From Paramoeba atlantica (taxonomy: Eukaryota > Protista > Discosea): DNA of 64,000 bases. Each line of letters opens with the position of its first letter. The stretch's first letter is position 1. Position numbers and translations under genes: made by a program. Below, piece by piece: positions 26,435-49,118 of the stretch. The stretch lies in contig CDRNVI010000012.1 in assembly GCA_977017575.1 (NCBI GenBank), positions 62,001 to 126,000 of the forward strand, in the 5' to 3' direction. Under the pieces are notes generated by a model that made no database searches, was not told the origin of the DNA, and saw only the letters and a list, made by a program, of their open reading frames with translations.

Positions 26435-27280
26435 CTCCCTCTCTCATTAATTTTTATAAATGGATCTCGAGTTATAAAAATTTAGTTTATGCGGGATCAT
26501 TAATTTTTATAAATCAGAAATTTATCGAACGCTATTTCTTAATTTTTTTCTAAAACAAAGAATTTTCTGTTATTCTACTTAAGATGGATTATTTTGTGAA
26601 CGTGGATGGACGCGCTTCGAAGAAATTTCTTACAGAAAAGCGCAAATGGTTGATTTCTATACTGGAGGCATAGAAGGCATGTAATATCACTTACTTTCTT
26701 AAAGAAATGTTTCTTTTATGCGTTTTTAGATGTACCGTCACCCCCCCTCCCTTGACTTAGCCTGCCAAAAAGTCGAAAAAATAGAAAAAAGCGGATAAGT
26801 CGCCCAGCCGACTGCGGGCCTAATTTGTCCGAAGGAGCGTCTTCGTTGCTCGGTCGCAATCCTATGTCGTAATGCATACTGCACTGCCGGATCCCAGGAG
26901 TTCTTCCACGTAAATTCAACCAGGACAGGTGGAATCGGTCGGGATCGTAAATCTCTAGTTTCAACCCTCTCAGCTTCAGATATTAGATTGATTCGTGAAA
27001 AAATGCTCATGTAGGGGAAAAGACAATCTTTTTGGGGGGGATTTTCTTTCTGAGATGAAGATACTGATTTTTGTAAAACGCGATTCACTGAAAAAGCATG
27101 GGGAAGCATGGTCGGGACCTACTCGCGGTCTTCCCTGGCACTACCATCTTACAGATCGTACAACGCCGACCTTTTTTTGGAATAGCGGTCATTTATACGG
27201 GATCATTAATTTTTATAATTATAATTATAACTCACTTTTTGTTATAATTTATAATTTATAAAAATTAATGAGAGGGAGAG
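26435..27280. mobile_element. Stowaway/mariner-type MITE (846 bp), TA TSD
   Basis: 27-bp TIRs CTCCCTCTCTCATTAATTTTTATAAAT, 25/27 match; same family as 36393-38035. Confidence 0.85.
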
Positions 27281-27713: not shown

Positions 27714-29834
27714 ATGTTACGTCGTCTAGTTGCTCCTTCAGCTCTTGGCTGTATTTTTTTTCCTCGGGAAACTTTGAGATGGTATATGGCGCTCAACCCC
27801 ATAACTGGAAATATTTTCAAGTATAGAACGTGTATGGAGGAGCTCGGCGTCGCCGCCGAACAAAGAAAGTACGAAAGTCCGTATTGGTTGACAGCTAATC
27901 AGCTAAAAACTCTTGTTCAAGGCGGATACGATATTGCTTTGAAAGAAAATCAAACGCCAATTCAACTCGTACAAAAAAAGCGACCGAGGCGCAAATTCTC
28001 GGATGAGAACAGTACCGAAGAAGCAGAACCAGTTTCTGAAGAACCAGTTGAACCCACTATTAAAGAGTACTACAATGCGGAGCAAACCACAGACAGTTCT
28101 ATTATTGAGAAACACGGAAAGCTGGCCCCGCTCTATAAAAAATTCAAATTCGTACCTCGCAATGCCAAGACAAATAAGATGTACCCGTTTCCTGGTTGTA
28201 TGATACTTCGCGTACAACAGATCCGAAATCGGTATAGGAGCGGTCTATGGCTCGCAGAAAATCAAATTGAGAATGAATCTGACATTTCCCTAAAAGAGGA
28301 CAGCAAACCAGTAAAACTGACATTTATGAAAAAAGAAGAGGACGACAGCTTGACGCCTGTCGAAACTGTTGTCTACCATATCGATCAAACTACTGACGCC
28401 CGTCGTTTAAAAATAGCACACACTCGCAAGAAGAAAACGGCGTTTAGTGGTCTAACAGGGAAAGAATATGCGCAACACTGTCAAGAAGCCCTAGTTGATG
28501 TGGCTATTACGCAACCCAATTATAGTAAATACTGGGTAACAGCGGGTCAGATGTCCAAATTCATTCCCCCTCTCAAACTAAAACCTGATATGAAAGGGGT
28601 CCCATTGAAAATGACCGATCTTCGAACTGGAAACAAAGTAGACGTCATGGTGTACAACATTGCGCAACTCGAGAACCGCACCGTTGTCCAAACGCACATA
28701 AAAAAACTCCATGGCCACCCGATTCATTACACCATCCTCTTCATCGGGGGCTTACTCAACAACACCGAGGAGGAGCTTCGCGCGGTGCTCCAGCAGTACG
28801 GCAAAGTGGAGCGTATCCAAGTGAAAACAGGCTTCGCGTTTGCCTATTGCTACTCCAAGTCCGACGCGGAGAATATTGTCTCCAAGTGCTGCGGGATGTC
28901 GCTCGGGGAGGCGCAGAGCCTTCACGTGGAGCTCGCACGGACAAAGTCCCAGACCGCGTGTCGGTCCATGGTGGAGACCGGGAAGTGTGTGTTCGGGGAG
29001 AAGTGCAAGTACAGCCACGACCCGGAGGTGCTGACCCTACGCGGGGGCCGGCGCCGAGGGGGGGCAGAGGAGGAGGGCGGGGAGCGGGGGGGACGAGGGA
29101 GGGGTGGGGGGTGGGGGGAGAGCAGAGGCCGCGGGTGGGGCACTCGAGGAGGGGGAGGGGGAGGCTGGGGGGAAAGTAGAGGAGGGGGAGGCTGGGGGGA
29201 AAGTAGAGGAGGGGGGTGGGGGGCCCCGGGTGGTCGTGGAAGAGGCGGTGGATGGGGTTCGCAGGAGGGAGGCAGAGGGGGTGGATGGGGTTCGCAGGAG
29301 GGGGGCAGAGGGGGTGGATGGGGTTCGCAGGAAGGGGGTAGAGGGGGTGGATGGGGTTCGCAAGAGGGGGGAAGAGGGGGTGGATGGGGTTCCTCAGACC
29401 GTGGAAGAGGCGGCTGGGGATCCTCGGACCGTGGAAGAGGCGACTGGGGATCCTCCGAGGGTGGCCGAGGGGGTGGATGGGGGTCCTCAGGCGGTGGACG
29501 TGGCGGTGGATGGGGTCCCAGTGCCGGTGGAGGGAAACCTGACGGAGATGGAAGCGCTGCGGGCTGGGGAAAATCCACTCAAGGCGGAAATGCTGGGTGG
29601 GGGAAGACCGGTGAAGGAGGTGGATCGAGTGGAAACTCCGGATGGGGTAAATCAGCGCAAGGAAGTGCCACCGAAGGCTCCTCGGGATGGGGAAAATCTC
29701 CCGCGTCAGGCGGTAGTTCGAGTGGATCAGCGGGTTGGGGGAAGTCTTCTGAGGGCGCGAGCGGAACATCTTCGGGCGGTGGATGGGGGAAATCCGGCGC
29801 TTCAGCTTCTTCAGGAGGGTGGGGACGTCGATAA
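27714..29834 (+). CDS. Tc38/RBP38-like protein: three ArdC-N-like ssDNA-binding domains, RRM, CCCH finger, GWG/RGG tail; likely mitochondrial
   Basis: MLRR N-terminus; three repeats of N/S..T.+.Y...W....Q...Y(N/H)..Q; LFIGGL and TGFAFAY RNP motifs; CRSMVETGKCVFGEKCKYSH; more than 20 GWG motifs. Confidence 0.7.
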   Translation: MLRRLVAPSALGCIFFPRETLRWYMALNPITGNIFKYRTCMEELGVAAEQRKYESPYWLTANQLKTLVQGGYDIALKENQTPIQLVQKKRPRRKFSDENSTEEAEPVSEEPVEPTIKEYYNAEQTTDSSIIEKHGKLAPLYKKFKFVPRNAKTNKMYPFPGCMILRVQQIRNRYRSGLWLAENQIENESDISLKEDSKPVKLTFMKKEEDDSLTPVETVVYHIDQTTDARRLKIAHTRKKKTAFSGLTGKEYAQHCQEALVDVAITQPNYSKYWVTAGQMSKFIPPLKLKPDMKGVPLKMTDLRTGNKVDVMVYNIAQLENRTVVQTHIKKLHGHPIHYTILFIGGLLNNTEEELRAVLQQYGKVERIQVKTGFAFAYCYSKSDAENIVSKCCGMSLGEAQSLHVELARTKSQTACRSMVETGKCVFGEKCKYSHDPEVLTLRGGRRRGGAEEEGGERGGRGRGGGWGESRGRGWGTRGGGGGGWGESRGGGGWGESRGGGWGAPGGRGRGGGWGSQEGGRGGGWGSQEGGRGGGWGSQEGGRGGGWGSQEGGRGGGWGSSDRGRGGWGSSDRGRGDWGSSEGGRGGGWGSSGGGRGGGWGPSAGGGKPDGDGSAAGWGKSTQGGNAGWGKTGEGGGSSGNSGWGKSAQGSATEGSSGWGKSPASGGSSSGSAGWGKSSEGASGTSSGGGWGKSGASASSGGWGRR
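28680..29830. other. C-rich to G-rich skew-flip island (flip about 28850) containing 30-bp tandem repeats
   Basis: Short C-rich arm, long G-rich arm; GGTGGATGGGGTTCGCARGARGG units about 29247-29390. Confidence 0.6.
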
Positions 29835-30171
29835 GTCCTGAACTTTATTGTCGGTACGATGGATGGTACCGGCGTAGCAAATTCCGAAGCTCACATTGTA
29901 TATGTATTCTCTATTTAGTCCAAGACTTTTATGTTATAACCTTAAAGACGGTGCTCATAGATGGCACTCACGGCGAATTATGTAGACCAAAGAAGTATAA
30001 AAGGCTATAGCGTGGAGTAATGAGACCTTAGTATAACCGATGAGAAATATTACTTGCATGTAAAGTGACAGTCAAGTCACTATTCATGACTACTCCATGT
30101 TATTTCTAGTCCTCATTTTATGTAGATTAGTTAGGTGTATTACTAACTTAAAGTACCAAGTACTGTGTTAC

Positions 30172-34095: not shown

Positions 34096-34149
34096 AAAAA
34101 TACAGATTGTTTAGTGCGTGGAGATGTGTACTACAACGCCATCAGCTAA

Positions 34150-34220
34150 ACCAGGGGGGTCTAAAGTATCTCTTGGCCAATTTATGAAAACAATAGCGCA
34201 TTTGAGAGCTCTCGCGAGGC
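34150..34220. repeat. Fragment of the repeat family also at 49142 and 52223
   Basis: GGGGGGTCTAAA...CCAATTT...CGCATTTGAGAGCTCTCGC shared with 49142-49235. Confidence 0.5.
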
Positions 34221-34473
34221 CCTCCTGTGGAATATGAGTTGTTTTCAGTAGTTTTAGAGGTCGGTGTTTTAGAGCTGCTTTAATTGGAAACGTTAATTCC
34301 AAAGTTATTTGGAGAACCGACCTCAGAATATGACCTTTTTATAGTATGCCTTTTTCCACATATTTTTTTGTCGTGTCAAATTTCGAACCAAATAGGGTAG
34401 CGAGGGAGTAGTGTCTCCCTCAATAAGGAACTCATTATAGTGTAGTGGAATTCAATAATAATCTTGAAATCAT

Positions 34474-36358
34474 GGTCAAAGTCAAGCATTATTTCACACT
34501 TTCAGAAAAATCTCATATTGACTGGTCATATTGACTTTTATAAAATTTATAGCATCTTAATTCTCTCTTCGAGTTATCTTAAACGCTAGCTTAAACTTAT
34601 TCTAGAACGATTTCCACGTTCTCGCAATACCACTTCACGCCTTGAAACAGGCGACGGAGGGCATGACCGTCTTGTTCTCCTCTTTTCAGCTTACCGTTTA
34701 CAACTTCTCCGGCGAACTTCAGCCTGTTGTCTCGCGCTTCTACTCCACTACCAAGTGTGCCGTTGCCCCGCATGCGGACTTCTTTTTTCAACATTCCGTT
34801 CATGCGCTCAGCAGTCTGAGTGTGCACCCCGGTGACAGGATCAACCCAGTGACGGCGATGGTTTACTGTTCCATGGTTGAGTCTGTTGCCCAAGGCATTG
34901 CTGCCTCTCCATCCATCCGTGTGAACAATGGTACGTTCGCTTGTGTCCAGTTAAAACACAGGGTCATTAGTCGAGGAACTACGGCGGTCTTCCAGCGTGC
35001 TTACAAATATCTGCTCAGCTTTCCGAGAACGAGAGGTCTGTGTCAGGAGGTTTGCCCAGGTTGATCCCCCCTGGCGAATGCGGGCTGGTCGGTTATTACC
35101 CCCCCTTTTTGGCTTAGAAAAGCAAGTTTCGTCTTTCTGCATGATAGTAACAGTGCCTCGTGCAGCCGCAGTTCGCATTTCATGAACGGAAGCAACAATA
35201 CGTTCCAACTTTTTTGTCAATTCTGTGACAGTTTGACTACTTAAAAGTGTTTCCAGAGTCAATTGATCACGACCATTGCCGTTCGTCGTACCATACACGT
35301 TCGCACAAAATGAAACTGTTACAAATGAGGTCTTTTTGAATGCAATGAAAAAACGAAATGGGTTTTTCAACTGGATGCATCGCCGCCCCGGGGCTACAAT
35401 TGTCCTTGACAACGCGCCAGGGCATGGGGAAGCCAGGAGAATAGGTAAGTTGGAAGACATCAAAATTATTGATTGGCCTTCGAAATCTCCTGATCTCAAT
35501 TTGATTGAGAATTTGTGGAGCATGATGGATAAGTACATCCACAGCCATCTCCGTCCACAGAATCGAAAAGAATTACAAGCGGCTATTCCAAAGGCCAAGG
35601 AATATTTGTTGAACGAATGTCACGAGGCGTATGTGAATACGCTAAAGAGTCTTCCCACGCGCCTCGCTATACTACGTGAGCGTGGAGGTGGGAATACTGG
35701 CTATTAAGACCTACTTTCTGGGTACTTTTTGGGCCGTGGTACGTAAAAATTACGAAATTTAGACCCGTTTTTCAATTTGCAAAATCTTTAAAATTTCACT
35801 TTTGTAACTCATTGGAAATGTTTTCCGGCGAACGTTTTTGTATTTTAAATAGCGTAGACACGATATTCAGAACGAGATCTCTCGTTTGCAACAAAAATCA
35901 GCTTAAACTGCCTCAGGACGCTAAAATGCGGACCTTGTCAGTTTTCGTGGCCCCCCCTGTATAGAATTTGAAGAATTTGGCTTGGTGTTCGGCGACCGAA
36001 GGAACTTAAGAGTGGCTCCATGTGGTATGTACGACTCCGACACAAACGATCGGGGCAGACCCAGTGAACGCCTTTCCGCAGGCAAATGCGAGTTTCATGC
36101 CGCTTGCTACAGCTGACGCTCTGGAAAACAAGTTTGTGGCCTTTCAACCACTCGATAATATCATTTTGGGGGGCGCGGGCGAGCACACTATAGCTAATAC
36201 TGTCTGTACATTGGAAATTGGGGCAAAACGAGCAATCCATCGAGAATAGTGCAGAAATATGCGAAAAACATCCTAAAAAACACTTTGTAAGTAAAATATG
36301 ATCAAATGAGAACATCAACTAAAGACTTTTTTTTGTGAAATAATGCTTGACTTTCACC
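34474..36358 (-). mobile_element. Complete Merlin element (1885 bp) with degenerate IS1595-type transposase
   Basis: 25-bp TIRs GGTCAAAGTCAAGCATTATTTCACA (24/25), 8-bp TSD GAAATCAT; QKDETCFSKPKRGG, IVHTDGWRG, TVNH...GVHTQTAERM. Confidence 0.92.
35296..35959 (+). mobile_element. Internally deleted Tc1-like element (664 bp) nested in Merlin, TA TSD
   Basis: LDNAPGH...DWPSKSPDLNLIENLW; right end CCCCCCCTG|TA; removing it restores the Merlin reading frame. Confidence 0.8.
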
Positions 36359-36826
36359 GAAATCATCTGTAAGAAATATAGAATTCAGTATACTCCTCTT
36401 CTCATTAATTTCTATAAATGCCATTCCTAATTTTTCTGAAAAAAATTATAGTTTTTCAAAAAATTATGTTTTTGAAGAAACAAAAGAGGAAAAGCTAGGA
36501 TAGAGGGGAGAACACCGCAGAAAAAATTGACCCTCACTTCCGACAAGGGCCTTGGATCTCACGTTCTGCGATAGCTTATCGCAGAAAACTAGCGTTTTTC
36601 CATCAGGCAGGATCATTTATCAGGTCTTTTGGCCTAAACATTCTCATTAATTTCTATAAATATAACTATAAGAGGGCTGAAACCTTTCTAAATTTGCCTG
36701 AATTTGCCTAAATTTGCTTTAGAAGTTGTCCATCAAAAAAACCTTTTACTAGGTAGAACTTTACTAGCTAAAAAACATTTACTAGGTATTCTTCTTTTTT
36801 AAACTACATACCTGTATAATAATTGA

Positions 36827-36875
36827 CTTGTCTGACATTGATTTCTTTGTTGTCTGTGTTTTCTGTTTTCTTAAG
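36827..36875 (+). promoter_or_regulatory. Candidate trans-splice acceptor (U-rich tract plus AG) for the cargo ORF
   Basis: TTTCTTTGTTGTCTGTGTTTTCTGTTTTCTTAAG ending 4 nt before ATG 36880. Confidence 0.5.
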
Positions 36876-36879
36876 GTGT

Positions 36880-37809
36880 ATGTTCGACTACGACCTTCCT
36901 CCGAGCAACGATGAATACGTGGATGACGGTCCTGATTCTCCTGATTCCGAGAGGTACTTGACCTTGAGAAAGTGGGTGGCGTACTCTACTCAAGAAACGT
37001 TCCGCATGCCATTAAAAAGGTCGGAAACTTCAATGGAGTTTTCACGTATGAGTAACGCCGAGAAGAACGCAATCAAGTACTCCCCTGAGCGACTGCCTCC
37101 ACCGGAACTAACCCAGCGAATGGAAGATAACATCGTTGCTTTGTGCGCTGGATGGGTGAGCTTGCGACTGCGCCAACTACTTGATCCGGAAAGCAACGTT
37201 CTTAAATCTTTGTGCAATGTCCCCATTGATGAGAACATATTACTGTACGGTCTTGTGCTCTTGACGAAGTCCCGGGACACGGGTCTTCTCTTTTTCAAAG
37301 ACGCGGAGCGATCAGAAATTCATGGGGTAAAGGAGGAAGAGATGCCCGGGCATTGGCAGTGGACGCAATCGACTCAGACATGGTCGCTGAGCTTCACTGA
37401 TGTTTCAACCGACGTTATCGCTGGTCACATGAAAGACTTCCTAAAGAAAAATTATGGAGGGGTTTATGAGGATACGAAGAAAGATCGCGAAGTTTTGGCC
37501 CATTGGTTTAAGACCATGTGGCGAGGGTTGCGTGGCAGCAATGCCCAAGATGGTAAAGTTTACCGGGATCGGAATAAAAAAATGAAGGAGAAAGTGGAAG
37601 AAAGTAGTACACGCACTGAAAGTATCGTATCCGATTTTCGAAAGTTGCGAGTTGAAATAGAAGAAATGCGTAATGAAATTTCGATCCTGCGCAAAAAGGT
37701 GCTATGTCTTGAAATTCAAAATTTGAATTCGTCTGTAAAGCAGACGAACTGTGTCGAAACTGAAGCAGTTTCCAAGAAGCGAAAGCCACATGATTTAGCT
37801 GGCCTCTAA
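36880..37809 (+). CDS. Orphan protein of about 309 aa inside a TIR element; coiled-coil C-terminus and KKRK NLS-like motif
   Basis: Uninterrupted ORF; no DDE or other family motif recognised. Confidence 0.6.
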   Translation: MFDYDLPPSNDEYVDDGPDSPDSERYLTLRKWVAYSTQETFRMPLKRSETSMEFSRMSNAEKNAIKYSPERLPPPELTQRMEDNIVALCAGWVSLRLRQLLDPESNVLKSLCNVPIDENILLYGLVLLTKSRDTGLLFFKDAERSEIHGVKEEEMPGHWQWTQSTQTWSLSFTDVSTDVIAGHMKDFLKKNYGGVYEDTKKDREVLAHWFKTMWRGLRGSNAQDGKVYRDRNKKMKEKVEESSTRTESIVSDFRKLRVEIEEMRNEISILRKKVLCLEIQNLNSSVKQTNCVETEAVSKKRKPHDLAGL

Positions 37810-38122
37810 TGTAGATCTTAAAGAGAAAGTTTATAAAATTCTTATGTTTTATAAAAAGTGAAAAGAAAGCCTTATAAAGCGTCTTATAAAACGCGTTGTA
37901 CCCAATATTCCTCACCAGTACTCAATAGGGCGCCACAAAATTTGCCTGAATTTGCTTTACTCAGTTTCAGCCCTCTAAATATAAATTTTCTTTTTTGTTA
38001 TAATTTATATTTATAAAAATTAATGAGAGGAGGAGTAATACAGTTACAATGACATTTTAACACCTAACTTACATATTTTTTGTATTATGCTTTTTTGACA
38101 GAATCATATCACTCCTTGAACA

Positions 38123-40501
38123 ATGAAATCAAAGAAAGGACGCTTCGTGTCACGTTCAACTAATTTTGTTGCTTTTGTACAAGCTTTGGGAAGCGCAAAA
38201 TCAAAACAAGAAGAAGATACCTTGATATCGCAGGAACTCGCAAAGTCAAAACTTCAACTTTCAGACAATACAGTAGACGACAAAATGAGAACTGAACTGA
38301 TCTTGCTGCTAGCGTATTGTGAAATGTGTGGGCATGCGGCGGATTTCGGGTATTTTAGCGCTGTGAGCATGGCTTCGTCAGTTTCTCCCGTGGTGAAGCG
38401 CATTGGATACGCTTGTGCAAGTCTTTTCCTATCTCCTGAACATGAATTTTCTTACCTTTTGGTGTCCACTTTGCAGCGTGATTTAAACAGCACGTGTATT
38501 CTTGAAATTGAAGCTGCTCTAAGTACAGCTGTAAAAATGGCTAGCGTGGATCTCATAGCCTCACTTATCGATTACACAACGTCGTTATTGAAGCATGATA
38601 GCCCGCGCATTCGAAAAAAAACCGTCCTCTTGTTATGTACTTTTCACCGTTTAGTTCCGAACTCTACAAGTGAAATTCAGGTGTATTTATCTACTCTGTG
38701 TGATCGTGATCCCCAAGTTATGAGCGCCGCTCTCTGTTTATGTGAGGAAATATCGACTACAGATCTGGAAGTTTCACGTCATCTGACGCCATCGCTGGTG
38801 TCGATTTTGAAGCAAATTATTGCACACCGGTTACCTTCCGAGTATGACTATCATCGCCTTCCAGCTCCCTGGATGCAAATACGTATTCTGCGTATATTTT
38901 CAGTTTTGGGAAAGAACGACGAGAAGCTTAGTCAAGAATGCTACGAAGTTGTAAGCGAAGTTATGAGGCGTGCAGACATTGGAATAGACATTGGAAATGC
39001 CGTAATTTATGAATGCATTTTGTGCGCTATATCTTTATACCCTCAGACATCGATATTGGGGGAAGCTAATCTGCACATCTGCAAATTTTTAGCGTCCCGT
39101 ATCGGAAATCTACGGTACGTTGGTCTGGAAGCCTTGGCGCGCATTGCAAAAATTGATCTCTTGTATGCGGTACAAAATCAAGAATTGATACTTGAATGCT
39201 TGGAAGATTCCGACGTAATGCTACGCAAAAAAAGTTTTACTCTTTTATGCTCGATGGCTAATCCGAAAAATGTTGATTTCATCGTTCGGCGTTTGGTGCG
39301 ATACCTTCGATATTTGAAGGATGTGCATCAACGTTCCGACCTTGTACGCCAAATTCTTTGCATATTAGATGACTACTGCACCTCGCAACCCGAATGGTAT
39401 ATTACTCAAGTAGGTGAGCTATGTCAGCTAGCATCAGAGTCATTACCAGAATCTTTCGTATCTTCCCTTCTCTGCAAATTTACTGAACGATTGATTCCAC
39501 TTTCTGAAAGTCTTTCCTCGAGCGTCATACAAATAAGTAACCGACTTCTGAGTGCGGAACAGACTTTCAGCGATCAGGTATATGCCATGTGCACATGGTT
39601 CATCGGAGAATTTGGTCATTATTCCCCCTCTTTTAGCCCACAAACCGTGCTGGACTCTCTTTCAGAAATCGTAGACAATTCGGTTATTGGGTACGATGCC
39701 AAACAATGTGCCCTCACGGCCGCACTGAAACTCTTTTTTAGGGTACCCCATCTTGAAATGGACTCAATACATCACGTGATCCTTGAAAACATGAGTTACT
39801 TTTGCATAGAGCTTCAGCAACAGTGTTATGAACTTATACAGCTGTTGAAGGAGGAAAGCAGTTCGTTTACTTTAACTACTTCGGAAAGTGATGAGGCAAA
39901 TTTACCCTTTCTGGATGGCTTCGTACAAAATGCCGCGAAACACGGATCTGCCCCATACGACCCGGATGGCCTTTTCACACTTAAATCACATCACCAAGAG
40001 CATTCTGGGCATGACAATGAAGCCTTCAAGCTCTTACTAAAACATCGCAATCCGTCGAGTGAGGAATCGCTTCCGCTACCAGATTCAGAGGAGGACATAT
40101 TGCATTTACCCTCGAAACACAGGAAATGGGGAAAGCATGAAGGAGAGTCTTCGCATCAACTGCGCTCTCCTTCGGTAGACGACGTCGCCATAGATGAAGA
40201 AATAGCTAGTATGAAAACTATTTCTATGGCGGAATATTCGAAAAATTCTTTTTATGTTACACAGCAGAAAGGTGCTGATAGAGAAAAGGTACGTAGCAGC
40301 CGCCGAGAGAAACTTGCCAAAGAGTTATTCGCAGGCACCAGTGAAACTAGCCTCGTGGAATCCAACGATACGAAAATTTCCACAGTAAAACGAAATACCA
40401 CCGAAAAAAAGCTGTATAGATCTACAGACTCTTCCACTTCAAAGAATAAGAATTCGAACTCTAGTAGTCGCAACACCCTGGATGACTTGTTTGGTACTTA
40501 G
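38123..40501 (+). CDS. AP4E1: AP-4 complex subunit epsilon
   Basis: Adaptin N domain; ALGSAKSKQEED, KRIGY, HRLPSEYDYHRLPAPWMQIRIL, NLRYVGL. Confidence 0.85.
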   Translation: MKSKKGRFVSRSTNFVAFVQALGSAKSKQEEDTLISQELAKSKLQLSDNTVDDKMRTELILLLAYCEMCGHAADFGYFSAVSMASSVSPVVKRIGYACASLFLSPEHEFSYLLVSTLQRDLNSTCILEIEAALSTAVKMASVDLIASLIDYTTSLLKHDSPRIRKKTVLLLCTFHRLVPNSTSEIQVYLSTLCDRDPQVMSAALCLCEEISTTDLEVSRHLTPSLVSILKQIIAHRLPSEYDYHRLPAPWMQIRILRIFSVLGKNDEKLSQECYEVVSEVMRRADIGIDIGNAVIYECILCAISLYPQTSILGEANLHICKFLASRIGNLRYVGLEALARIAKIDLLYAVQNQELILECLEDSDVMLRKKSFTLLCSMANPKNVDFIVRRLVRYLRYLKDVHQRSDLVRQILCILDDYCTSQPEWYITQVGELCQLASESLPESFVSSLLCKFTERLIPLSESLSSSVIQISNRLLSAEQTFSDQVYAMCTWFIGEFGHYSPSFSPQTVLDSLSEIVDNSVIGYDAKQCALTAALKLFFRVPHLEMDSIHHVILENMSYFCIELQQQCYELIQLLKEESSSFTLTTSESDEANLPFLDGFVQNAAKHGSAPYDPDGLFTLKSHHQEHSGHDNEAFKLLLKHRNPSSEESLPLPDSEEDILHLPSKHRKWGKHEGESSHQLRSPSVDDVAIDEEIASMKTISMAEYSKNSFYVTQQKGADREKVRSSRREKLAKELFAGTSETSLVESNDTKISTVKRNTTEKKLYRSTDSSTSKNKNSNSSSRNTLDDLFGT

Positions 40502-40607
40502 CTTCGCACATTGAGCTTGATGGACAGCGTTGTTTACGAGTCATGGCACACGTTGGCAGAAGTCGGGAGTTTGTATGTTATTGCATTGTAAGGGAATAAT
40601 AATCATA

Positions 40608-41542
40608 CTGTTATCCCCCCTTACTTCACGACAAGCCCACTGGGTCCCAGTGGTTGAGCAAGATGCGTCAATTTTTTTCCTCCTACCTACGTCCTAGGGA
40701 ACATGATTCGATGGCTATGCCACCCATGCTAAAGTGGACGAGGGAGATACCAATAGACTATTGCTATTATAGTACAGGTGCGGTAGTTTCCCACAGGAAA
40801 AAGATATCTCCCTTATGGAATGAGTGCATACAGACGCATACAAAGGTGGGATGCCATTTTTCCTGTGGAAACTGCCGCACTTGTACTATTGATATTGATC
40901 TCCCTCATTCACTTGGAATCACCCTTGGAATCTGTTTGTATCTTCTCCACCAATTATACCATCGAACGTTGAATCATTCGAGGGGCTTCGGGTGTGATCT
41001 TATGCGATCTCGAATGGCCTCACTTGATCTTGGCTGATCCCATTTTTCCCCTCGTTGGACACTATGAAGATTTGGATGGTAGCGTATGGCACTGGATCTC
41101 ACTGGATGCCTAATTTCATATGTAAACCACATTTCCAGTTAACATGCCTATACCTTGGACAACATACCGAGGGGTGTGTTATTCTGGCCCGCAGCACTTA
41201 ACGTACCCCCCCCCCTCCTCGTCTATGACTTTTTTTGTGTCTTCAGTATGAAACCCCTGTTGTCACTGCTAACGAATTTATGATTCGTATTTATGATTCC
41301 TTAGGATAGTCTTTACTTTTTCATGCCTTGGGTACTCTCTCGATTCCCATACCTCTGTTTTGCATGGCGCTGGATGGCAGTGGACAACTGCATAGTGTCC
41401 ATTCGCAGCCCCTCACTTTTCCCTCACTCAAACTTACCCCCCCCCTTACTTAGTCATCTCCCCTACTTCACCACTCCCCTTGCTTCACCACAAAATATGG
41501 ATTTTGGGATAAAAAATGGGGGTTAAGCAATCGGGGTAACGG
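40608..41542. mobile_element. Possible degenerate MITE with imperfect TA|C(T/C)GTTA(T/C)CCC ends
   Basis: TACTGTTATCCCCCCTTACTT vs reverse complement TACCGTTACCCCGATTGCTT; internal direct copy near 41434. Confidence 0.35.
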
Positions 41543-41669: not shown

Positions 41670-42314
41670 ATGAACATTGGCGCCTCTGGTCCGTCCTCCC
41701 CGACGCTGAGTAAAAACTGGGCTGATCATATCTTGGAAGACTCACACGAAACACCAACTCGGGTCTCAGTCCCGGTCTTCCCGAAGTGGAGCCGAAGAGC
41801 CAAGCAAGCGCTCGAGAGTACTACCCCTGGAAATACTCCAGCGGCAAAGTTGAGCTCGCAAGAAGGTGCTTCTTACGGTGCGAGCTCCCCTTCCATAAGT
41901 TATACCCCTAGAAGTGCTGCGAATCCAAATAAGATTGCTCAACAGCGCGTTGCGCTATCACCGCTTCCGATAAACGCTAGTGTTTTTGCTAGTTCTGGTG
42001 CAATCTCACAAGGTGCTGCAACTTTTTCTCCTGAGTATTTTTCCACCTCCAAAATTGTAGAGCAACTTAGAAAAATAGTGGGAGCACATTTTCAAGGTAT
42101 ATCGCTTCCCGAGCTGGAAGCCAGAACACAGTGGTCATCCCACTATGCTTCCTTCTGCAATGGTTTGAGTCTACTCGAGTTTCTACAACTCAATGAAAAA
42201 GAATTTAACATCGACCTGCGAAGTTTCGTCGTGCGCATTCGCGAATCTACGGAGGATACTCTATTATCTTCGTTGTTAAGTGTGCCAGCCTTTCACATTC
42301 CTCTCGATGCATAA
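41670..42314 (+). CDS. Disordered Ser/Pro-rich protein with possible C-terminal LOTUS/OST-HTH domain
   Basis: LRKIVGAHFQGISLPELE...GLSLLEFLQ pattern. Confidence 0.45.
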   Translation: MNIGASGPSSPTLSKNWADHILEDSHETPTRVSVPVFPKWSRRAKQALESTTPGNTPAAKLSSQEGASYGASSPSISYTPRSAANPNKIAQQRVALSPLPINASVFASSGAISQGAATFSPEYFSTSKIVEQLRKIVGAHFQGISLPELEARTQWSSHYASFCNGLSLLEFLQLNEKEFNIDLRSFVVRIRESTEDTLLSSLLSVPAFHIPLDA

Positions 42315-42809
42315 TGCTGCTTCGTTTTATCATAGTAGATGCGAAAAAAAGTAAATGCGCTTTCGTGCAGAGAAACTGATGTGTGTACTTGTAGCAAGTG
42401 CGACATGCGAGTTCAATGACGGGATAGCAATTTAGAATTTGTAGCTATAAAAATTTCGGCATGCAAAACATTATTCTGTGAATATTTGGAAAAATAGCGT
42501 TATTTGGCTCTTACAATCTTGTTTCTTGCATTAAAAAGTTAGGCTCCTGTAGATATTTTGAAACCAAAATGGGGAAAAAAACATTTTGAAACCAAAGTAG
42601 TTGCGTTTTAGGCAATGTGCCGTAAAATTGGCCTCAGATTTTCAATGAAGCGGGATTTCTATTTTGGGAAATGGTCATCGTACATAACCTGCATCTCATT
42701 CATACACCTTTCTTCATAGGAACATGAATTTTAGTTTCAACTAAATGACACTATCTCGGCGGCATTGCCGTTTCTGAAAAAAATATCTGAAACGACTCAA
42801 CTTCACCTA

Positions 42810-44110
42810 CACACGCCTACACCATGTCCTCATCTACTGCGCCGCCTCGACGTTTCGAGCGTCGCGACCCACCCCCCGGTCGCCCACCCCCCCGCCCCAC
42901 CGACGACCACCACTCCTCCCTCGGCCCCAACACCGCCGCCAACAAGGAACTCCTCCGTGACTTCTTCCTCACCACCCGTGGGCCACCCCCCCTCGACCTC
43001 CCACCCCCCGACACCAGCTCCCCCCCGTACTACCCCCCCCTCCTCCACGCCATCGCCTCCCGTCAACGCTCCACCCTCCCCTTCTCCCTCCCCACCCTCG
43101 CCGCGCACAGCCCCGAATGCCACACCCTCGCCCACCACATGACCACCAACATCCTCTCCGCACTCGAGGACGTCACGGAGGTCGTGGACTCACTTCTCCC
43201 CTCTTCTTCTTCCACGACTCCTTCCACTCCCCCCCCTCCCCCCGCCGACCTCCTCGACCACCTCTCCCTTGAGTTCGGCGACCAGCTCCCCAGGGCTCTT
43301 ACCCGTCGCTTCCGTCTCGAGCTCACCCCCCTTCCCCCTTCAACTCCCCCCCTTCACCACTCCCCCTTCACCCCCCTGCGCCACATGAAGGCCACGCTCA
43401 CCGGCGCCCTCCTCCAGCTCCGCGGCACCGTCACCAGCGCCTCCCCGGTGCGCCCCGTGCTGCGCGTGCTCACCGCGCTGTGCGAGCTGTGCTCCGCGGT
43501 GACCTTCGTGGAGGTCCCCGGGGACACGTTCACGATGCCCACCAAGTGCGGGAGTGGGCGCTGCCGCGGGTCCGGGCCCGGGGGGGGCGGGATGCTGCGA
43601 CCGCAGTACCAGGCGTCCCGGATGACGAGCTACCAGGAGCTGCGGCTGCAGGAGCTGCGGGGGGACGTGCCGCGGGGGACACTGCCGCGGACGGTGAAGG
43701 TGGTGTGTGAGGGGGAGCTGTGCTGTGGGGTGGCGTCGCCGGGGGGGACGGTGGTGGTGCTGGGGGCGCTGGTGCCGGATTTGTCGTACAGTGTGTCGAG
43801 GCGGTTCAGGGGGGATTGTCAGGTGACGCTGGTGGTGCAGGCGTTGAGGTGTACGCCGATGAGGAGGGATTACGCGGAGGGGCTGCCGTCGGGGGAGGTT
43901 ACGGCGGCGTTGCAAGGGGTGCGGGGGGAGGAGGATGCGACGAGGATGCGGAAGGCGGTGAATAGTATTGCGCCGGAGATTTTTGGGCTCTCGGAGGTGA
44001 AGAAGGTGGTGTTGTGTCTGCTCGCGGGCGGGGACTCGGTGCACACGAAGGACGGGATGATTATTCGTGGGGATATTAATGCCTTGCTTACGGGAGACCC
44101 TGGGGTGGCG
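42810..44110. other. Strongest C-rich to G-rich skew-flip island (flip about 43480); weaker second flip about 44800
   Basis: Near-exclusive C-ending codons 42850-43450 and G/T-ending codons 43530-44110. Confidence 0.85.
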
Positions 44111-45184
44111 AAGTCGCAAATCCTAAAGTGGGTCTCGGGCGTCGCCACCCGGGGCGTGTTCACCTCCGGAATGGGAAGCTCTGGGGTAGGGCTCACCGCC
44201 GCCGTGGTCAGCGACCCCATCACCGGGGAAAACATGCTCGAGCCCGGTACGCTGATTTTCGCCGACAAAGGAGTGTGTTGTATTGACGAGTTCGATAAGA
44301 TGAACGAAAGCGATCGCACCGCGCTGCACGAGGTGATGGAGCAGCAAACCATTAGTCTCGCAAAGGCGGGGATTATCACCACAATGAACTGCCGCACTGC
44401 AGTGCTCGCCGCCAGTAACCCACAGTACGGGCGGTGGAACAGCTCCCGCACCCCCATGGAGAACATTAACCTCCCCACCGCACTGTTCTCCCGGTTTGAC
44501 ATCGTCTGGGTTATCCGGGATCGTTACAACGAGGAGGACGACAAGAATCTGGCCACCCATGTCGCGCTGGTGCACACCCACCCCGAGGCTGCGGTGACGC
44601 AAGACCGACACGACCCCAACGCCGCCGGCGTGTCCACTCTGGACGAGCCCACGCTAGGCACCGATCGTTGCTACGACCGTCCCACGCTGCTCGCGTACCT
44701 GGCCGATATCAAGTCCGTCCAACCTCGATTTTCCCCCTCGAGTGTCCAGTTGATTACGGATCTGTACTTGCTGATGCGACGAGAGGGCAACCACGGGTTC
44801 GCGGTGACCACACGTAACCTGCTGGGTATTCTCCGTCTCTCCCGGGCTCTCGCTCGTCTGCGGTACAGCCCCGCGATTGAGGATGCGGACATTAAGGAGG
44901 CCGCGCGGCTGCTGGAGCTCAGTCGGGTGAGCCTCGTGGAGCAGCCCGAGGTCACCCACCGTGGGGCACTGCAGAAGAGCGACGTGTACAACATGATTCG
45001 AGACTTCTTCGGGGCCCTCCCCGCCGGGTCCGTGGTGCAGGTCCAAGAGTGCCGAGATGGGTTACGCAGGCAAGGGGTCTCGGAGGCCATGTTGCGAGAG
45101 ACGATTGATATGTATACCCTGCTGCGGGTGTGGACGCATGGGGAGAACTACGACGTGCTGCATATGGTAAGTGGACTGAGTTAA
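42824..45184 (+). CDS. MCM7: MCM2-7 helicase subunit, most like MCM7
   Basis: GDPGVAKSQIL, GSSGVGLTAAV, CCIDEFDKM, DRTALHEVMEQQTIS, LFSRFD, TTRNLLGILRLS. Confidence 0.9.
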   Translation: MSSSTAPPRRFERRDPPPGRPPPRPTDDHHSSLGPNTAANKELLRDFFLTTRGPPPLDLPPPDTSSPPYYPPLLHAIASRQRSTLPFSLPTLAAHSPECHTLAHHMTTNILSALEDVTEVVDSLLPSSSSTTPSTPPPPPADLLDHLSLEFGDQLPRALTRRFRLELTPLPPSTPPLHHSPFTPLRHMKATLTGALLQLRGTVTSASPVRPVLRVLTALCELCSAVTFVEVPGDTFTMPTKCGSGRCRGSGPGGGGMLRPQYQASRMTSYQELRLQELRGDVPRGTLPRTVKVVCEGELCCGVASPGGTVVVLGALVPDLSYSVSRRFRGDCQVTLVVQALRCTPMRRDYAEGLPSGEVTAALQGVRGEEDATRMRKAVNSIAPEIFGLSEVKKVVLCLLAGGDSVHTKDGMIIRGDINALLTGDPGVAKSQILKWVSGVATRGVFTSGMGSSGVGLTAAVVSDPITGENMLEPGTLIFADKGVCCIDEFDKMNESDRTALHEVMEQQTISLAKAGIITTMNCRTAVLAASNPQYGRWNSSRTPMENINLPTALFSRFDIVWVIRDRYNEEDDKNLATHVALVHTHPEAAVTQDRHDPNAAGVSTLDEPTLGTDRCYDRPTLLAYLADIKSVQPRFSPSSVQLITDLYLLMRREGNHGFAVTTRNLLGILRLSRALARLRYSPAIEDADIKEAARLLELSRVSLVEQPEVTHRGALQKSDVYNMIRDFFGALPAGSVVQVQECRDGLRRQGVSEAMLRETIDMYTLLRVWTHGENYDVLHMVSGLS

Positions 45185-45359
45185 GGGGGTGGGGATGTGG
45201 ATGAGAAAAAATGATCCTTTTGTGTAGTTTTTTGGATCGTACCGTTTTGGTAGAGTGTTATTGTACAGCGCTTCCTGAAAGTGTGTACTGTTTTCGCAAG
45301 TACACGTATGCTGTCACTCTTGATTAAACATGGTATGGTTGCAAAGGTAAGTTCTTGTT

Positions 45360-45389
45360 TTTGCTGTATTTCATTTCTTTCTGTTACAG
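45360..45389 (+). promoter_or_regulatory. Candidate trans-splice acceptor for uL13m
   Basis: TTTCATTTCTTTCTGTTACAG, 11 nt before ATG 45401. Confidence 0.45.
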
Positions 45390-45400
45390 ATATCCCTCCG

Positions 45401-46033
45401 ATGTTGCAAAAGAGTCCTCTCTGCCTCGATGTTTACATGAACCGAGGTGGTTTCCCGCATTTCCTAAAGCGCCATAAGCACCACCCGTTCGGTAAAATTT
45501 TGTACAACGAAATCTCAAAACCTTATGTACACCGTGACTGCGAGAGGTGGTGGTTGCTGGATGCGACAGGAATGCAAATGCCGTTTCTCGCAAAGACCGT
45601 CTCACACTACGTCCAGGGTCATCACCGGGTCGATTTTGAGCAAGGAAAAATCATGGGAGACCACGTAGTGGTGATCAACTGCAAGGATGCCGTGATGGTA
45701 GGAGAGGAGTGGATCCGTGTGCCGATTCGGTGGGAGACAAAGTATCCCAGTGGTCGGTACTCCGTGCGCTGCGCTGACATGTACGATAAGGACCCCTGTA
45801 TGGTGGTGTGGCACTTCTTGCGTCGTGAGATTGTTGAGCGTGGTTGGAATCGCAAGGAACACTTGATGCAGGGTCATATGGAGAAAGCTTGGTTGTACAC
45901 GGACCACATCCACCCCCATATGGATAAAGACCCGCGCCCTGTGCCTTGGAGTGACCACAACCCACATTACTACGCTTGGACCTCTGAGCGGGCCAGAACA
46001 GGGAGGTGGGATCCGAATCCACAAATGCGGTAA
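45401..46033 (+). CDS. MRPL13: Mitochondrial ribosomal protein uL13m (kinetoplastid type)
   Basis: WWLLDATG, QGHHR, GDHVVVINC, WLYTDHIHPH. Confidence 0.7.
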   Translation: MLQKSPLCLDVYMNRGGFPHFLKRHKHHPFGKILYNEISKPYVHRDCERWWLLDATGMQMPFLAKTVSHYVQGHHRVDFEQGKIMGDHVVVINCKDAVMVGEEWIRVPIRWETKYPSGRYSVRCADMYDKDPCMVVWHFLRREIVERGWNRKEHLMQGHMEKAWLYTDHIHPHMDKDPRPVPWSDHNPHYYAWTSERARTGRWDPNPQMR

Positions 46034-46208
46034 CCTAATATGGGGAGGTTGTGTTGAGTTGTAGATGTTGTGTTGAGTTGTAGATGTCCCTGTACAATGA
46101 TATGTACACTACACTGGAGTGACTACAGTGGAGTTGTACAAAAGAATTTTTTGAACATAATGTATTCATTTTCTTTAGAAATATTGCAGTTACTTATCCT
46201 ACATTCAA

Positions 46209-47543
46209 ATGCAAGCCGTTCCACAGTCTCCCATTCACGACAGCACATGGAAAAATGCGCTCCATGGCACCGTAATCGTATGCGCACTCCAGCTCTTGCG
46301 TAGTTTGTGGCAACAACGCAAAGCGTCTCGTCAGCCTACCTCTAGCGCCCTGCAACGACTGAAGAAAGCCAGCCGAGCAAAGGACTTCGCAGCCGTCGAG
46401 AGTGTCGTGGACGACCTCCTCTCCCTCCTAGAAGACGATTTACAAAACAAAAAAGCCGGATCCAAACTGGAACTCGAACACAACTTCCACCACTTAGTCA
46501 CCCACCTCCTCGCCCACCACAACAGCATCACCGAGGTCTGTCTCCTCAAAGCCCTCCGTCTCATCCGCCAATGCTGCCACGACGACCCCCCGTGCAGCGC
46601 CGCCTTCGCCCACGCCCACGGCATCCGTCATCTCGTCTCCCTCCTGCAAAACGCCCACGCCCACGCTTCCCTCGCCCCCATGACCGAGATCGCCCACACC
46701 CTTTTCCAGTGCACCGCTGTCCCTTCTGAGTCCTCTGAGTCCCCTGAGTCTCCCCCCGCCCCCTCCGCGGCCCTCGCACTCCTCTCCCTCTCCTCTGTGG
46801 TCAACTCCATGCTACGCACGCTGGACCCCACTGCCCCCGAGCCCTTCCTGGCCGCCATGGTCGGGGTCTGTGCCAACCTGTGTGCGCTCCCCCACGGCTG
46901 CCGTACCCTCGCAACCGCCGTGGACGACAAGCCCGGGGCGGGGTACTTTATTCCCTTGTTGGCCCACAGTGGCAGTAGTGGGAGTAGTGGGAGTAGCAGT
47001 AACTCGGGTAACGTCGTGGAACGCGCCCTGCTGGTGTTACACCGTATGGCGACCCACGCGCTGCCGGATTGCGTGGCTGTGCTGCGGGGGCCGGAGAGTG
47101 TCCACGCGCTGGTGGAGCTGCTGGAGGTGCGTCGGGGGGGGAGCATCGCGGGGATCGCGCTGCAGGTGGTGGGGGTGATGGTGCAGGAGACCGGGAGGGA
47201 GGACCGGGAGGGGTTTCTGCGGGAGTTTGTGTTGCAGGATGGGATTGATGGGTTGTACACGTTGTGGTGTTCCGGGACGGATCGGGGGTGTAGGGACCGG
47301 GCGGAGGGGTTGGTGCAGGTACTGGATCGGGATGCGGTGTGGGGAGGGACGGTGCAGAAGTTAAGGGAGGTGTATGGGTCGATGATTGCACGTCGTCGAG
47401 AGGCGGACCAAAAGGAGCAGAAGCAACGGATGCAGAGTATGCAGCAACAGCGTATGTTTCAGCAGATGATGATGGAGCAGATGGGAATGGGTGAGGGGAT
47501 GGGAGGAGGGATGGATGAGATGATGGGCGAGGAAGAGATGTAG
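46209..47543 (+). CDS. ARM/HEAT-repeat protein of unknown function with Gln/Met/Gly-rich tail
   Basis: LKALRLIRQCC, GIRHLVSLL, AMVGVCANLC, VERALLVLHRM helical repeats. Confidence 0.55.
   Translation: MQAVPQSPIHDSTWKNALHGTVIVCALQLLRSLWQQRKASRQPTSSALQRLKKASRAKDFAAVESVVDDLLSLLEDDLQNKKAGSKLELEHNFHHLVTHLLAHHNSITEVCLLKALRLIRQCCHDDPPCSAAFAHAHGIRHLVSLLQNAHAHASLAPMTEIAHTLFQCTAVPSESSESPESPPAPSAALALLSLSSVVNSMLRTLDPTAPEPFLAAMVGVCANLCALPHGCRTLATAVDDKPGAGYFIPLLAHSGSSGSSGSSSNSGNVVERALLVLHRMATHALPDCVAVLRGPESVHALVELLEVRRGGSIAGIALQVVGVMVQETGREDREGFLREFVLQDGIDGLYTLWCSGTDRGCRDRAEGLVQVLDRDAVWGGTVQKLREVYGSMIARRREADQKEQKQRMQSMQQQRMFQQMMMEQMGMGEGMGGGMDEMMGEEEM
46400..47540. other. C-rich to G-rich skew-flip island (flip about 46930)
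   Basis: C-rich 46480-46860, G/T-rich 46970-47540. Confidence 0.8.
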
Positions 47544-47876
47544 CGGTTCATGAGTCTATGGACCTTGCGTAGAACTTGTCAACGAACGGGGGGGGATACA
47601 TTGTTACGTTTATGGATTAGCTGAATGTGACGAACTACTAATGCTTTACAAAATTTAGTACGTACATTACGTGCGTCTAAAAATTGTATAAATATGGATT
47701 ATCTCGGCTTTCAAGAAGATAACCAGCACGAAAATGGAAAGCAACGAATGTTTTATCCGATAGTCGACCTTTTTTTGTGATAGTACGTTTCAAATGAAAT
47801 ACTTTTACGAAGGCTCTGTATAACATAATGTTGGATTTAGAAAACCAATTCTTTTATCAATGCTATTGATCCAAAA

Positions 47877-49118
47877 ATGAACTCGTTGAGGGAAGACATT
47901 GACACGGAGGCGCTTCTGAACTGGTTTACATTTTCACGTGCCACGGGATCTTTGCCCCACTTCTGGAGTTTACTTCGCACTCCTCGTTATGACCCATTTT
48001 TCTTTACCTTGCTACCTCCCAAGTTGAAAGCAACGCTTCGTATCCTGTGCCGTGTTCTACCCTATGAGTGTTTTGATCTTGTCAAAGATTGGGTAACGAT
48101 CGTTGGAAACACGGATTCAGTAAGCGAAAAAGCATTGGAGGGGACGAAAGGTTTCTCTGTAAGCCCGAATGATTCGACCCGTTTGTTTGCACGAGTCAGA
48201 CCACGCGGTATAGCTACAAACGCGTCTGCAATGACTACGGAGGACTTGCTATACTGCTTCCAAAGATACGGATTTATCTCAGCCGAGCACATCGCGGGAA
48301 ATGATTACTACATTGAACTCGATTCCAGCGAGCAAGTAACAGCGGCTGTGAGTGACAGACAACCACATCCCTACATACAGTTTATGGCCTTTTGTGGTAA
48401 TGACTTTTCCGCCACAGACTTAAAAGAAGCCCATCTGCTTTTATCCGATCATCAGGATGAACATTCTATGGAAGGTAAAGGTACGACAGAAGTTCCATCA
48501 CTTGTGTTCGATCCCGACCACCCATTACTTCATACAGACGGATTCGTTCCCGATCTTGTAGTGGATAACATTTCACCGTATATCACTGACGAACAGCTGA
48601 CAGAGTACTTTCGGGAGTATGGTACAGTGGAAGAGCTTCGGATGAGTACAAATGACCGCAGTGGTATGCACTATGGTTGTGCTGTGGTTCAAATGAAAAC
48701 TGCAGCGGAGGCTTTCGGCGCGGCCGATGGGCTCCATGAGAAACGAATTATGGGTAAACCTATTTTGGTGGGGTACGTAAATCCTGCATTGGAGTTGTGC
48801 AATCTTCGCACGGGAAATCCCTTGCGGATTCGCTCAACCAAACTTGGGAGGGTACCCAAGCACTTTAACGTTGAAAACAACATGGAACAGGAAACTGTTT
48901 CATGTACGAGATTCCCTCGCGAAGAACCCGTAGTACAAGCCGGTTCGGTCTCAGACACTGCGTGGTATCCACAAGGGAATGAGCCACCTTCTCGATCCAG
49001 TGAGACAGCGGGTACACAACTCCCTCGGGGTATAGTCTGCTATTATTGTCGTGAGCCGGGCCACACAATACACATGTGCCCGGTGCGTTCTCGGGAGATG
49101 GTACAGCAAGGGTGGTAG
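47877..49118 (+). CDS. RRM plus CCHC zinc-knuckle RNA-binding protein
   Basis: LVVDNISPYITDEQLTEYFREYG, HYGCAVVQM, CYYCREPGHTIHMC. Confidence 0.7.
   Translation: MNSLREDIDTEALLNWFTFSRATGSLPHFWSLLRTPRYDPFFFTLLPPKLKATLRILCRVLPYECFDLVKDWVTIVGNTDSVSEKALEGTKGFSVSPNDSTRLFARVRPRGIATNASAMTTEDLLYCFQRYGFISAEHIAGNDYYIELDSSEQVTAAVSDRQPHPYIQFMAFCGNDFSATDLKEAHLLLSDHQDEHSMEGKGTTEVPSLVFDPDHPLLHTDGFVPDLVVDNISPYITDEQLTEYFREYGTVEELRMSTNDRSGMHYGCAVVQMKTAAEAFGAADGLHEKRIMGKPILVGYVNPALELCNLRTGNPLRIRSTKLGRVPKHFNVENNMEQETVSCTRFPREEPVVQAGSVSDTAWYPQGNEPPSRSSETAGTQLPRGIVCYYCREPGHTIHMCPVRSREMVQQGW

Follow-up and report, generated by a model that had tools for sequence, protein, structure and literature searches.

A 64,000-nt stretch of contig CDRNVI010000012.1 (positions 62,001 to 126,000; assembly GCA_977017575.1, filed under Paramoeba atlantica), hereafter the window, carries at 36672-37975 a 1304-bp unit that is bounded by terminal inverted repeats (TIRs) and contains a single open reading frame (ORF), ORF1. 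This unit is very probably a young, ORF1-only, non-autonomous deletion derivative of a two-gene PIF/Harbinger transposon family. Its 3-bp TWA duplication, short TIRs and the pairing of ORF1 with a DDE transposase in its relatives place it in PIF/Harbinger, for which these are the hallmarks (PMC2836001, PMC13668399). ORF1 stands beside a transposase at other loci (numbered L001 to L008 below) and the window has no such transposase, which identifies the unit as an ORF1-only deletion derivative; membership in the family and the linkage of ORF1 to the transposase are direct observations. A sequence-only reading had described the gene as an intact orphan, but profile searches recovered relatives (16 at E<=1e-10), and at four other loci the homologue lies in an element beside a DDE_Tnp_4 transposase. 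Among the identities that it had entertained, the Harbinger-type partner is the one that applies, as in the rest of its family ORF1 is closely followed by a gene for such a transposase; an anti-silencing factor, a new recombinase or foreign cargo fall away, ORF1 being the remainder after loss of the transposase gene. The unit is built as follows.

36669-36671, no strand: left copy of the target-site duplication, TAA (joint 36668>37976 in runs X1 and X4, three letters fitting both sides)
36672-36683, plus strand: left TIR, GAGGGCTGAAAC (repeat search; same motif class at the left ends of L001, L003, L004, L005, L006 and L008)
36690-36719, plus strand: three tandem subterminal decamers, AAATTTGCCT, GAATTTGCCT and AAATTTGCTT (repeat search)
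36843-36872, with AG at 36874-36875, plus strand: pyrimidine-rich tract and AG, candidate spliced-leader (SL) trans-splice acceptor for ORF1 (sequence)
36880-37809, plus strand: ORF1, 309 aa, intact, ATG at 36880 and stop ending at 37809 (ORF list, family alignment)
37938-37957, plus strand: two right-end subterminal decamers, AAATTTGCCT and GAATTTGCTT, direct relative to the left set
37964-37975, minus strand: right TIR, GTTTCAGCCCTC on the plus strand, exact reverse complement of the left TIR
37976-37978, no strand: right copy of the target-site duplication, TAA (sequence and read joint)

The anatomy described in the sequence-only reading was recovered. The TIR is perfect over 12 bp (13 bp with the adjacent A/T counted), TAA abuts both ends and is made a target-site duplication by the read joint, and the decamers, three on the left and two on the right, are direct rather than inverted, all on the plus strand and confined to the vicinity of the two element ends. 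Within the 64 kb, the 18-mer that spans two decamers is confined to these two ends (0.13 expected), which exceeds chance, and the decamers are putative binding sites for element proteins. The ORF is uninterrupted over 309 aa and starts at the family-conserved ATG (MxxDLPP), 4 nt downstream of the AG that closes the pyrimidine-rich tract. The lack of a transposase was likewise upheld, and for more than the unit: tblastn with the family transposase gave no match anywhere in the window.

A word-indexed protein search with the window ORF returned only P0001, its counterpart in L002, and P0002 from L001, which is 41% identical. A profile of those two run against 1.8 billion representative proteins gave 23 matches, including the 16 mentioned above. 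Most are fragments of 80-250 aa that tile the ORF, the signature of a decaying repeat family, and an intact ORF1 was found at two loci only, the window (with the near-identical P0001 in L002) and P0002 in L001. The five traced ORF1/transposase relatives and the L002 counterpart lie on contigs of one ENA assembly, from the same or a near-identical organism. At L001, L003, L004 and L006 the ORF1 homologue is followed, ~150-300 bp on and on the same strand, by tblastn-detected pieces of a DDE_Tnp_4 transposase. Pfam scores for this domain (PF13359) are 39.9 bits for P0025 of L006 (E 4e-10) and 27 bits for L003, both above the cut-off of 24.8 bits, and 19.5 bits for L001, below it. Two of the relatives are complete elements, L004 5837-9354 (TIR GAGGGTTGAAACCT, flanks TTA/TTA) and L006 5006-7313 (TIR GAGGGTTGAAAC, TAA/TAA). 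The family form of the TIR is GAGGGnTGAAAC: six left ends align as TWA + GAGGGnT.A..C (6/6 left flanks TWA), three right ends align as GTTTCA(G/A)CCCTC + TWA, and the motif GAGGG[C/T/G]T[G/C]AA[A/G]C stands at the left ends of 7 elements and, inverted, at the right ends of 4; for L001, L003 and L005 a search that allowed <=2 mismatches found no right end. The whole end structure, TWA + GAGGGnT.A..C + subterminal ~10-bp repeats, recurs at six independent loci. A perfect 13-bp inverted repeat within 2.6 kb is expected ~0.05 times by our own estimate, which taken alone is not negligible, but the idea that an ordinary, lineage-specific gene of the host merely happens to lie within an inverted repeat is refuted by this recurrence and by the empty site in reads (below), and we give it practically no credence.

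The transposase alignment retains the motifs ILDGVP, ADKAY and RNRVERF down to P0028, a 39%-identical protein from another sample, and includes a glutamate presumed to be catalytic. The L001 transposase has one in-frame stop, those of L003 and L004 are frameshifted or fragmented, and P0025 lacks its N-terminal 42 residues and has a C-terminal frameshift. At L008 (4860-6413) there is a transposase-only element of 1554 bp with family TIRs and no ORF1, whose ORF P0031 is full length (370 aa) and has K where all other copies have the presumed catalytic E; its flanks are unequal (TTA left, TAT right), an exception to the matched TWA duplication. This element is the mirror image of the window element, and ORF1-only and transposase-only derivatives both exist in the family.

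Several observations accompany these copies. At the L008 locus, genes of hAT (Dimer_Tnp_hAT), Merlin-like and Tc1/mariner type are also found next to one another. An ORF for an ISXO2/IS1595-type (Merlin-like) transposase of 281 aa (L004 6493-7338, minus strand) is nested between the truncated ORF1 and the transposase pieces of L004, and tandem G-rich repeats of the GGGGGGGTCCAG type lie near Harbinger copies at L006 11956-12150 and L001 12354-12391. P0016, an 894-aa tandem-repeat protein from another assembly, matched the ORF1 profile through 13 weak repeats and was treated as spurious. L007, a Logan contig from another sample, encodes a 39%-identical DDE_Tnp_4 transposase of 376 aa followed by a 273-aa ORF (ORFs 110-1240 and 1578-2399), the gene order being reversed relative to the ORF1-transposase elements. 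The second ORF has only a W..xxWR..G motif and a coiled coil in common with ORF1, and its alignment to the WFxxxWRxLRG region reaches an hhalign probability of just 4%; as no more than a lead, it may be a very distant relative of ORF1 in another organism.

The insertion history of the window element was read by aligning on 35200-40700 the contigs of three runs from the same organism, all of them DNA-like. Two of the runs, X1 and X4, contain the joined form 36668>37976, which skips 1307 bases with 3 shared letters, the shorter side of the joint measuring 25-28 nt only. The single TAA in this joined form marks it as the empty site, and TAA is therefore the target-site duplication. The target lies inside an older miniature inverted-repeat transposable element (MITE), within the intergenic stretch that separates two genes of a one-way host cluster, and the sequence-only reading's claim of a separate MITE shell was borne out by the shell TIRs and by a second copy that aligns across the insertion point.

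36391-36668, no strand: left part of the MITE shell (TIR twice, at 36399-36419 and 36641-36661)
37979-38037, no strand: right part of the MITE shell (inverted TIR at 38009-38037)
26441-27274, no strand: second copy of the shell MITE, with no Harbinger insertion (paralogous empty site at ~27205-27230)

Set against the reconstructed empty site, the second copy is continuous through the insertion point and lacks the inner element, and 0 of 500 shuffles reached the score of its alignment to the left part. The shell TIR (TACTCC..CTCATTAATTT.TATAAAT) measures 21-29 bp and begins (TA)CTCC(C/T)TC. Copies of the shell MITE number two in the window, with others in L001 and L006, and the left part has a read depth ~14x that of its single-copy neighbour. 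TA flanks were read by eye at the second copy only, and the window holds Tc1/mariner transposase remnants. The outer shell is real and older than the inner element; it resembles a Stowaway MITE and may derive from Tc1/mariner. The second copy also contains, at 26958-26969, a solo Harbinger-type right end, GTTTCAACCCTC, with the TIR of the L004/L006 subfamily followed by TCA; there is no matching left end near it, and it is possibly a truncated insertion.

Further read evidence places the window element or its close copies elsewhere. In a second insertion flank the left TIR is joined to ...GGAGGTT followed by TA GAGGGC, which fits a TTA duplication; another copy has lost 37022-37640 (619 bp) and has a 4-nt AACA filler in its place, short fillers at internal deletions being typical of abortive gap repair; and a third departs from the window element after 36814. 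As a rough guide only, the element has a summed depth ~1.3-3.6x that of adaptin, the gene next to it. L002 is a near-identical counterpart of the window locus (99.5% over 20 kb) with the same insertion present. The empty site, the duplication, the other insertion sites and the deletion derivative together demonstrate that the window element has been mobile, and they support its being a genuine TIR transposon, flanked by a TAA duplication of 3 bp and inserted recently in the older MITE.

Subterminal repeats vary by subfamily. The ~10-bp repeats of the three complete elements are confined to the outermost ~60 nt on either side and have the same orientation at both ends, with no inverted 8-mers in common. 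The repeat unit is AAATTTGCCT in the window element, GGGTTTGCCT in L003, GGTTTTGCC in L004, CGTGTTCGCC in L001 and GGGTGCG(G/T) in L006 and L008. More closely related ORF1 proteins pair with more alike repeats (five cases), a covariation that would be expected if an element protein reads the repeats. Two traits are unusual: ORF1 lacks a recognisable DNA-binding domain, and the subterminal repeats of the two ends are direct copies of each other.

ORF1 comprises a helical N-terminal domain (~24-218), a coiled coil (222-292) and KKRK at 299-302. The 41%-identical copies share an N-terminal DLPP, LRKWV, CAGW, VPIDE.ILL, SRDTGLLFFKD, GVKEEEMP..WQW, EV.A.WF...WR.LRG and the C-terminal coiled coil. 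KKRK, which could be a nuclear localisation signal, is KRHK in L003. A first AlphaFold2 (AF2) model, built on 2 sequences, was unusable (predicted local distance difference test, pLDDT, 53); with 19 sequences the pLDDT rose to 77.9, and the model predicts helices at 24-42, 75-101, 118-131, 177-191 and 202-217, small strands, and one helix spanning 222-292. The fold comparisons that the sequence-only reading had envisaged yielded the coiled coil only and no match for the globular part. Foldseek with the AF2 model found nothing in the PDB, AFDB clusters, Swiss-Prot models or the ESM Atlas, a wide VIA search with it matched the 75-residue coiled coil alone, and the ORF1 profile matched only coiled coils among PDB sequences. 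Pfam searches of 19 ORF1 family members, with E values up to 10 admitted, gave weak coiled-coil families and no Myb, SANT or MADF domain; a 50-residue three-helix unit within a 200-residue helical domain could escape a whole-protein model search. Look-alikes proposed by a language model (plant DUF1985, PMD and ULP-type transposon proteins) scored <=0.69, below the useful level, and were discarded.

Comparison among copies, which the sequence-only reading had also suggested, indicates constraint between subfamilies. Between the window and L004 copies of ORF1, the nonsynonymous rate (dN) is 0.20 and the synonymous rate (dS) 2.8, a dN/dS of ~0.07 that points to purifying selection on ORF1 as the subfamilies diverged; this is the closest pair and the sole usable ratio, dS being saturated between other subfamily pairs. 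Such selection, an ORF that is intact, sense to its cluster and equipped with its own pyrimidine tract and AG, and the recurrent co-domestication of Harbinger proteins (PMC9710019) would all suit a host gene domesticated from a Harbinger ORF1 and retained for a cellular function. The domesticated pairs HARBI1/NAIF1, ALP1/ALP2 and insect DPLG indeed derive from the same two transposon proteins, and the window resembles them in having an intact accessory ORF among host genes (PMC9710019). Those genes, however, lack TIRs and duplications and are single-copy and syntenic, whereas the window copy has perfect TIRs, an intact duplication, an empty site, near-identical paralogues and a deletion derivative. 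Its homologues lie within TIR-bounded elements beside transposase genes, and none was found outside a transposon context among the 1.8 billion representative proteins. We regard domestication as highly improbable.

The host is a kinetoplastid: the product of the gene at 45281-46033, the mitochondrial ribosomal protein uL13m, matches T. brucei and Leishmania far better (1e-54 to 1e-64) than other organisms (1e-11), and all long ORFs of the window are on the plus strand. Kinetoplastid genes lie in one-way clusters without gene-specific promoters. Expression of ORF1 would then rely on read-through and trans-splicing. In the window, L001, L004 and L005 alike, the ~25 nt that precede the ATG of ORF1 include a pyrimidine tract and AG, which fit an SL acceptor, though such tracts are common. 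The earlier statement that the ORF is sense to the host cluster is true of the window copy but not of the family at large: relative to called neighbour genes, copies are sense in the window, L003 and L004 and antisense in L005 and L006.

These elements suggest the following model. The full family element is ~3 kb long and consists of a TWA duplication, a TIR of 12-14 bp (GAGGGnTGAAAC), several subterminal repeats of ~10 bp, ORF1, a ~300-bp spacer, a same-strand DDE_Tnp_4 transposase gene, subterminal repeats in the same orientation and the second TIR; the window copy has lost the transposase gene and kept ORF1 whole. In PIF/Harbinger elements ORF1 proteins bind the ends, bind the transposase and mediate its nuclear import (PMC2836001, PMC13668399). 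By analogy with Harbinger3_DR and Ping/Pong, ORF1 would recognise the subterminal decamers, use its coiled coil for oligomerisation or transposase contact, and take the transposase into the nucleus via KKRK. The window copy would depend for movement on a transposase provided in trans, and its own ORF1 could in turn serve other copies. ORF1 would be made from a host read-through transcript, with the element-borne pyrimidine tract and AG serving as SL acceptor. Alternatively, an ORF1-only copy might act as a brake, its surplus protein occupying ends or titrating transposase and so damping transposition of the family. The coiled coil, which suggests oligomerisation or partner binding, and the coexistence of ORF1-only and transposase-only derivatives are compatible with this, but the comparable split arrangement in Caenorhabditis inopinata has been read as complementation, not inhibition (PMC13668399), and we think a brake very unlikely.

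Several results weigh against the favoured reading. Two run searches returned DNA-like runs and a single RNA-labelled run of the organism, and none of ORF1's sequence words was found in the latter. The search for an autonomous partner recovered the two-gene relatives L001, L003, L004 and L006, but no clearly functional transposase among the copies aligned, P0031 having K at the presumed catalytic position and the rest stops, frameshifts or truncations, and the traced loci yielded no two-gene parent for the subfamily to which the window element belongs. In ORF1 only the coiled coil matches anything, no Myb, SANT or MADF domain being detected, and its putative DNA-binding role is argued from position and analogy. 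The window element differs from L002 at 4 of 1310 bases, and both differences within the ORF (99.7% identical) are non-synonymous, a sample far too small to show constraint in the window copy. A contiguous empty site was not found by BLAST among the traced loci, and the evidence for one comes from the read joint and the alignment to the second MITE copy. It is possible, if somewhat unlikely, that the element is as we describe it and that ORF1 is intact only through the youth of the insertion, as an unexpressed, non-functional, passive copy heading to decay. The missing RNA words, the lack of a demonstrably active transposase and the non-synonymous differences from L002 would all fit such a copy, as would the fragmentary state of most family ORF1 copies and the 7 changes, spread over all codon positions, in a partial contig of run X4. 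On the other side, the near-identical deletion derivative and the other insertion sites speak for recent mobilisation, a process for which elements of this superfamily require some source of ORF1 (PMC2836001), and the window locus is one of just two found with an intact ORF1.

An ORF1-only deletion derivative is an ordinary kind of transposon product, here in a group where PIF/Harbinger is barely described. Like Harbinger3_DR of zebrafish and Ping/Pong/mPing of rice, the family has a TWA duplication, short TIRs, independent ORF1 and DDE_Tnp_4 transposase genes, a transposase without an evident DNA-binding domain, and deletion derivatives or MITEs of the kind mobilised in trans (PMC2836001). 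It differs from them in an ORF1 with no detectable Myb, SANT or MADF domain or fold match, in subterminal repeats that are direct, not inverted, at the two ends, and in its kinetoplastid host, with expression presumably by read-through and trans-splicing. The closest precedent is Harbinger-1M_cIno of C. inopinata (2026), 1.63 kb long against 1.30 kb here, which likewise keeps the accessory gene and has lost the transposase, and which has a separate transposase-only locus, TTA/TAA duplications and a two-gene reference copy that is pseudogenised (PMC13668399). That element has 258 copies and a documented new insertion, whereas we find few subfamily copies and no observed transposition event; its accessory protein is a clear MADF protein; and our transposase-only element, L008, is from a different subfamily, with K in place of the presumed catalytic E. 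The C. inopinata authors called the separation of accessory and transposase genes previously unreported in the superfamily (PMC13668399). The present family looks like a second, independent instance of accessory and catalytic genes on separate elements, in a eukaryote far removed from nematodes and at a much lower copy number.

A bolder reading would make ORF1 the founder of a new non-Myb class of end-binding proteins, co-evolving with subfamily decamers whose direct orientation at both ends would imply an asymmetric synaptic complex, in a lineage that has split, independently of the nematode case, into trans-complementing ORF1-only and transposase-only elements expressed purely by polycistronic read-through and SL trans-splicing at element-borne acceptors. 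We hold this combination of claims to be unlikely.

Trypanosomatids are held to lack DNA transposons, and Merlin is the only class II superfamily reported from kinetoplastids in the literature that could be searched (PMC8101967, PMC12278014). Our searches on Harbinger with kinetoplastids or Bodo saltans found nothing else, their coverage being incomplete and no proof of novelty. The Merlin elements of Bodo saltans and Perkinsela are, like the present family, DNA transposons of non-trypanosomatid kinetoplastids (PMC8101967), and Merlin-like (ISXO2-like) pieces occur in the window as well as nested in L004, but Merlin is another superfamily, with one gene and a different duplication. The genome studied here, one of long one-way clusters, holds a PIF/Harbinger family with signs of recent movement beside Tc1/mariner, Merlin-like and hAT pieces and MITEs, and lends itself naturally to the question of how a cut-and-paste transposon that needs two proteins is expressed without promoters of its own. 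For annotation, the 'orphan' family should be labelled transposon ORF1, not host genes.

Transposons of at least four types are nested in the spacer at 34100-38120, which lies upstream of the adaptin gene. Tc1/mariner (DDE_3, HTH) and Merlin-like (ISXO2-type) remnants lie in the window at 35315-35704 (plus strand) and at 9141-10698, 34624-35253 and 11270-11790 (all minus strand). The sequence-only reading had every recognisable transposase in the window broken; the tblastn matches to these two types are mostly partial or split, which upholds this in part, and the Merlin-like match at 34624-35253, which spans most of its query as one stretch, may be intact. The segment 35752-35935 is a high-copy repeat, with a summed contig depth ~59x that of the single-copy adaptin gene in run X2, and a joint 35293>35960 (666 skipped) was seen in 2 runs. 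GC content is 0.54-0.57 at 28001-30000 and 42001-48000, against ~0.42 elsewhere, and in the first of these stretches the GC skew is strongly positive (0.26) and both strands carry long ORFs that overlap.

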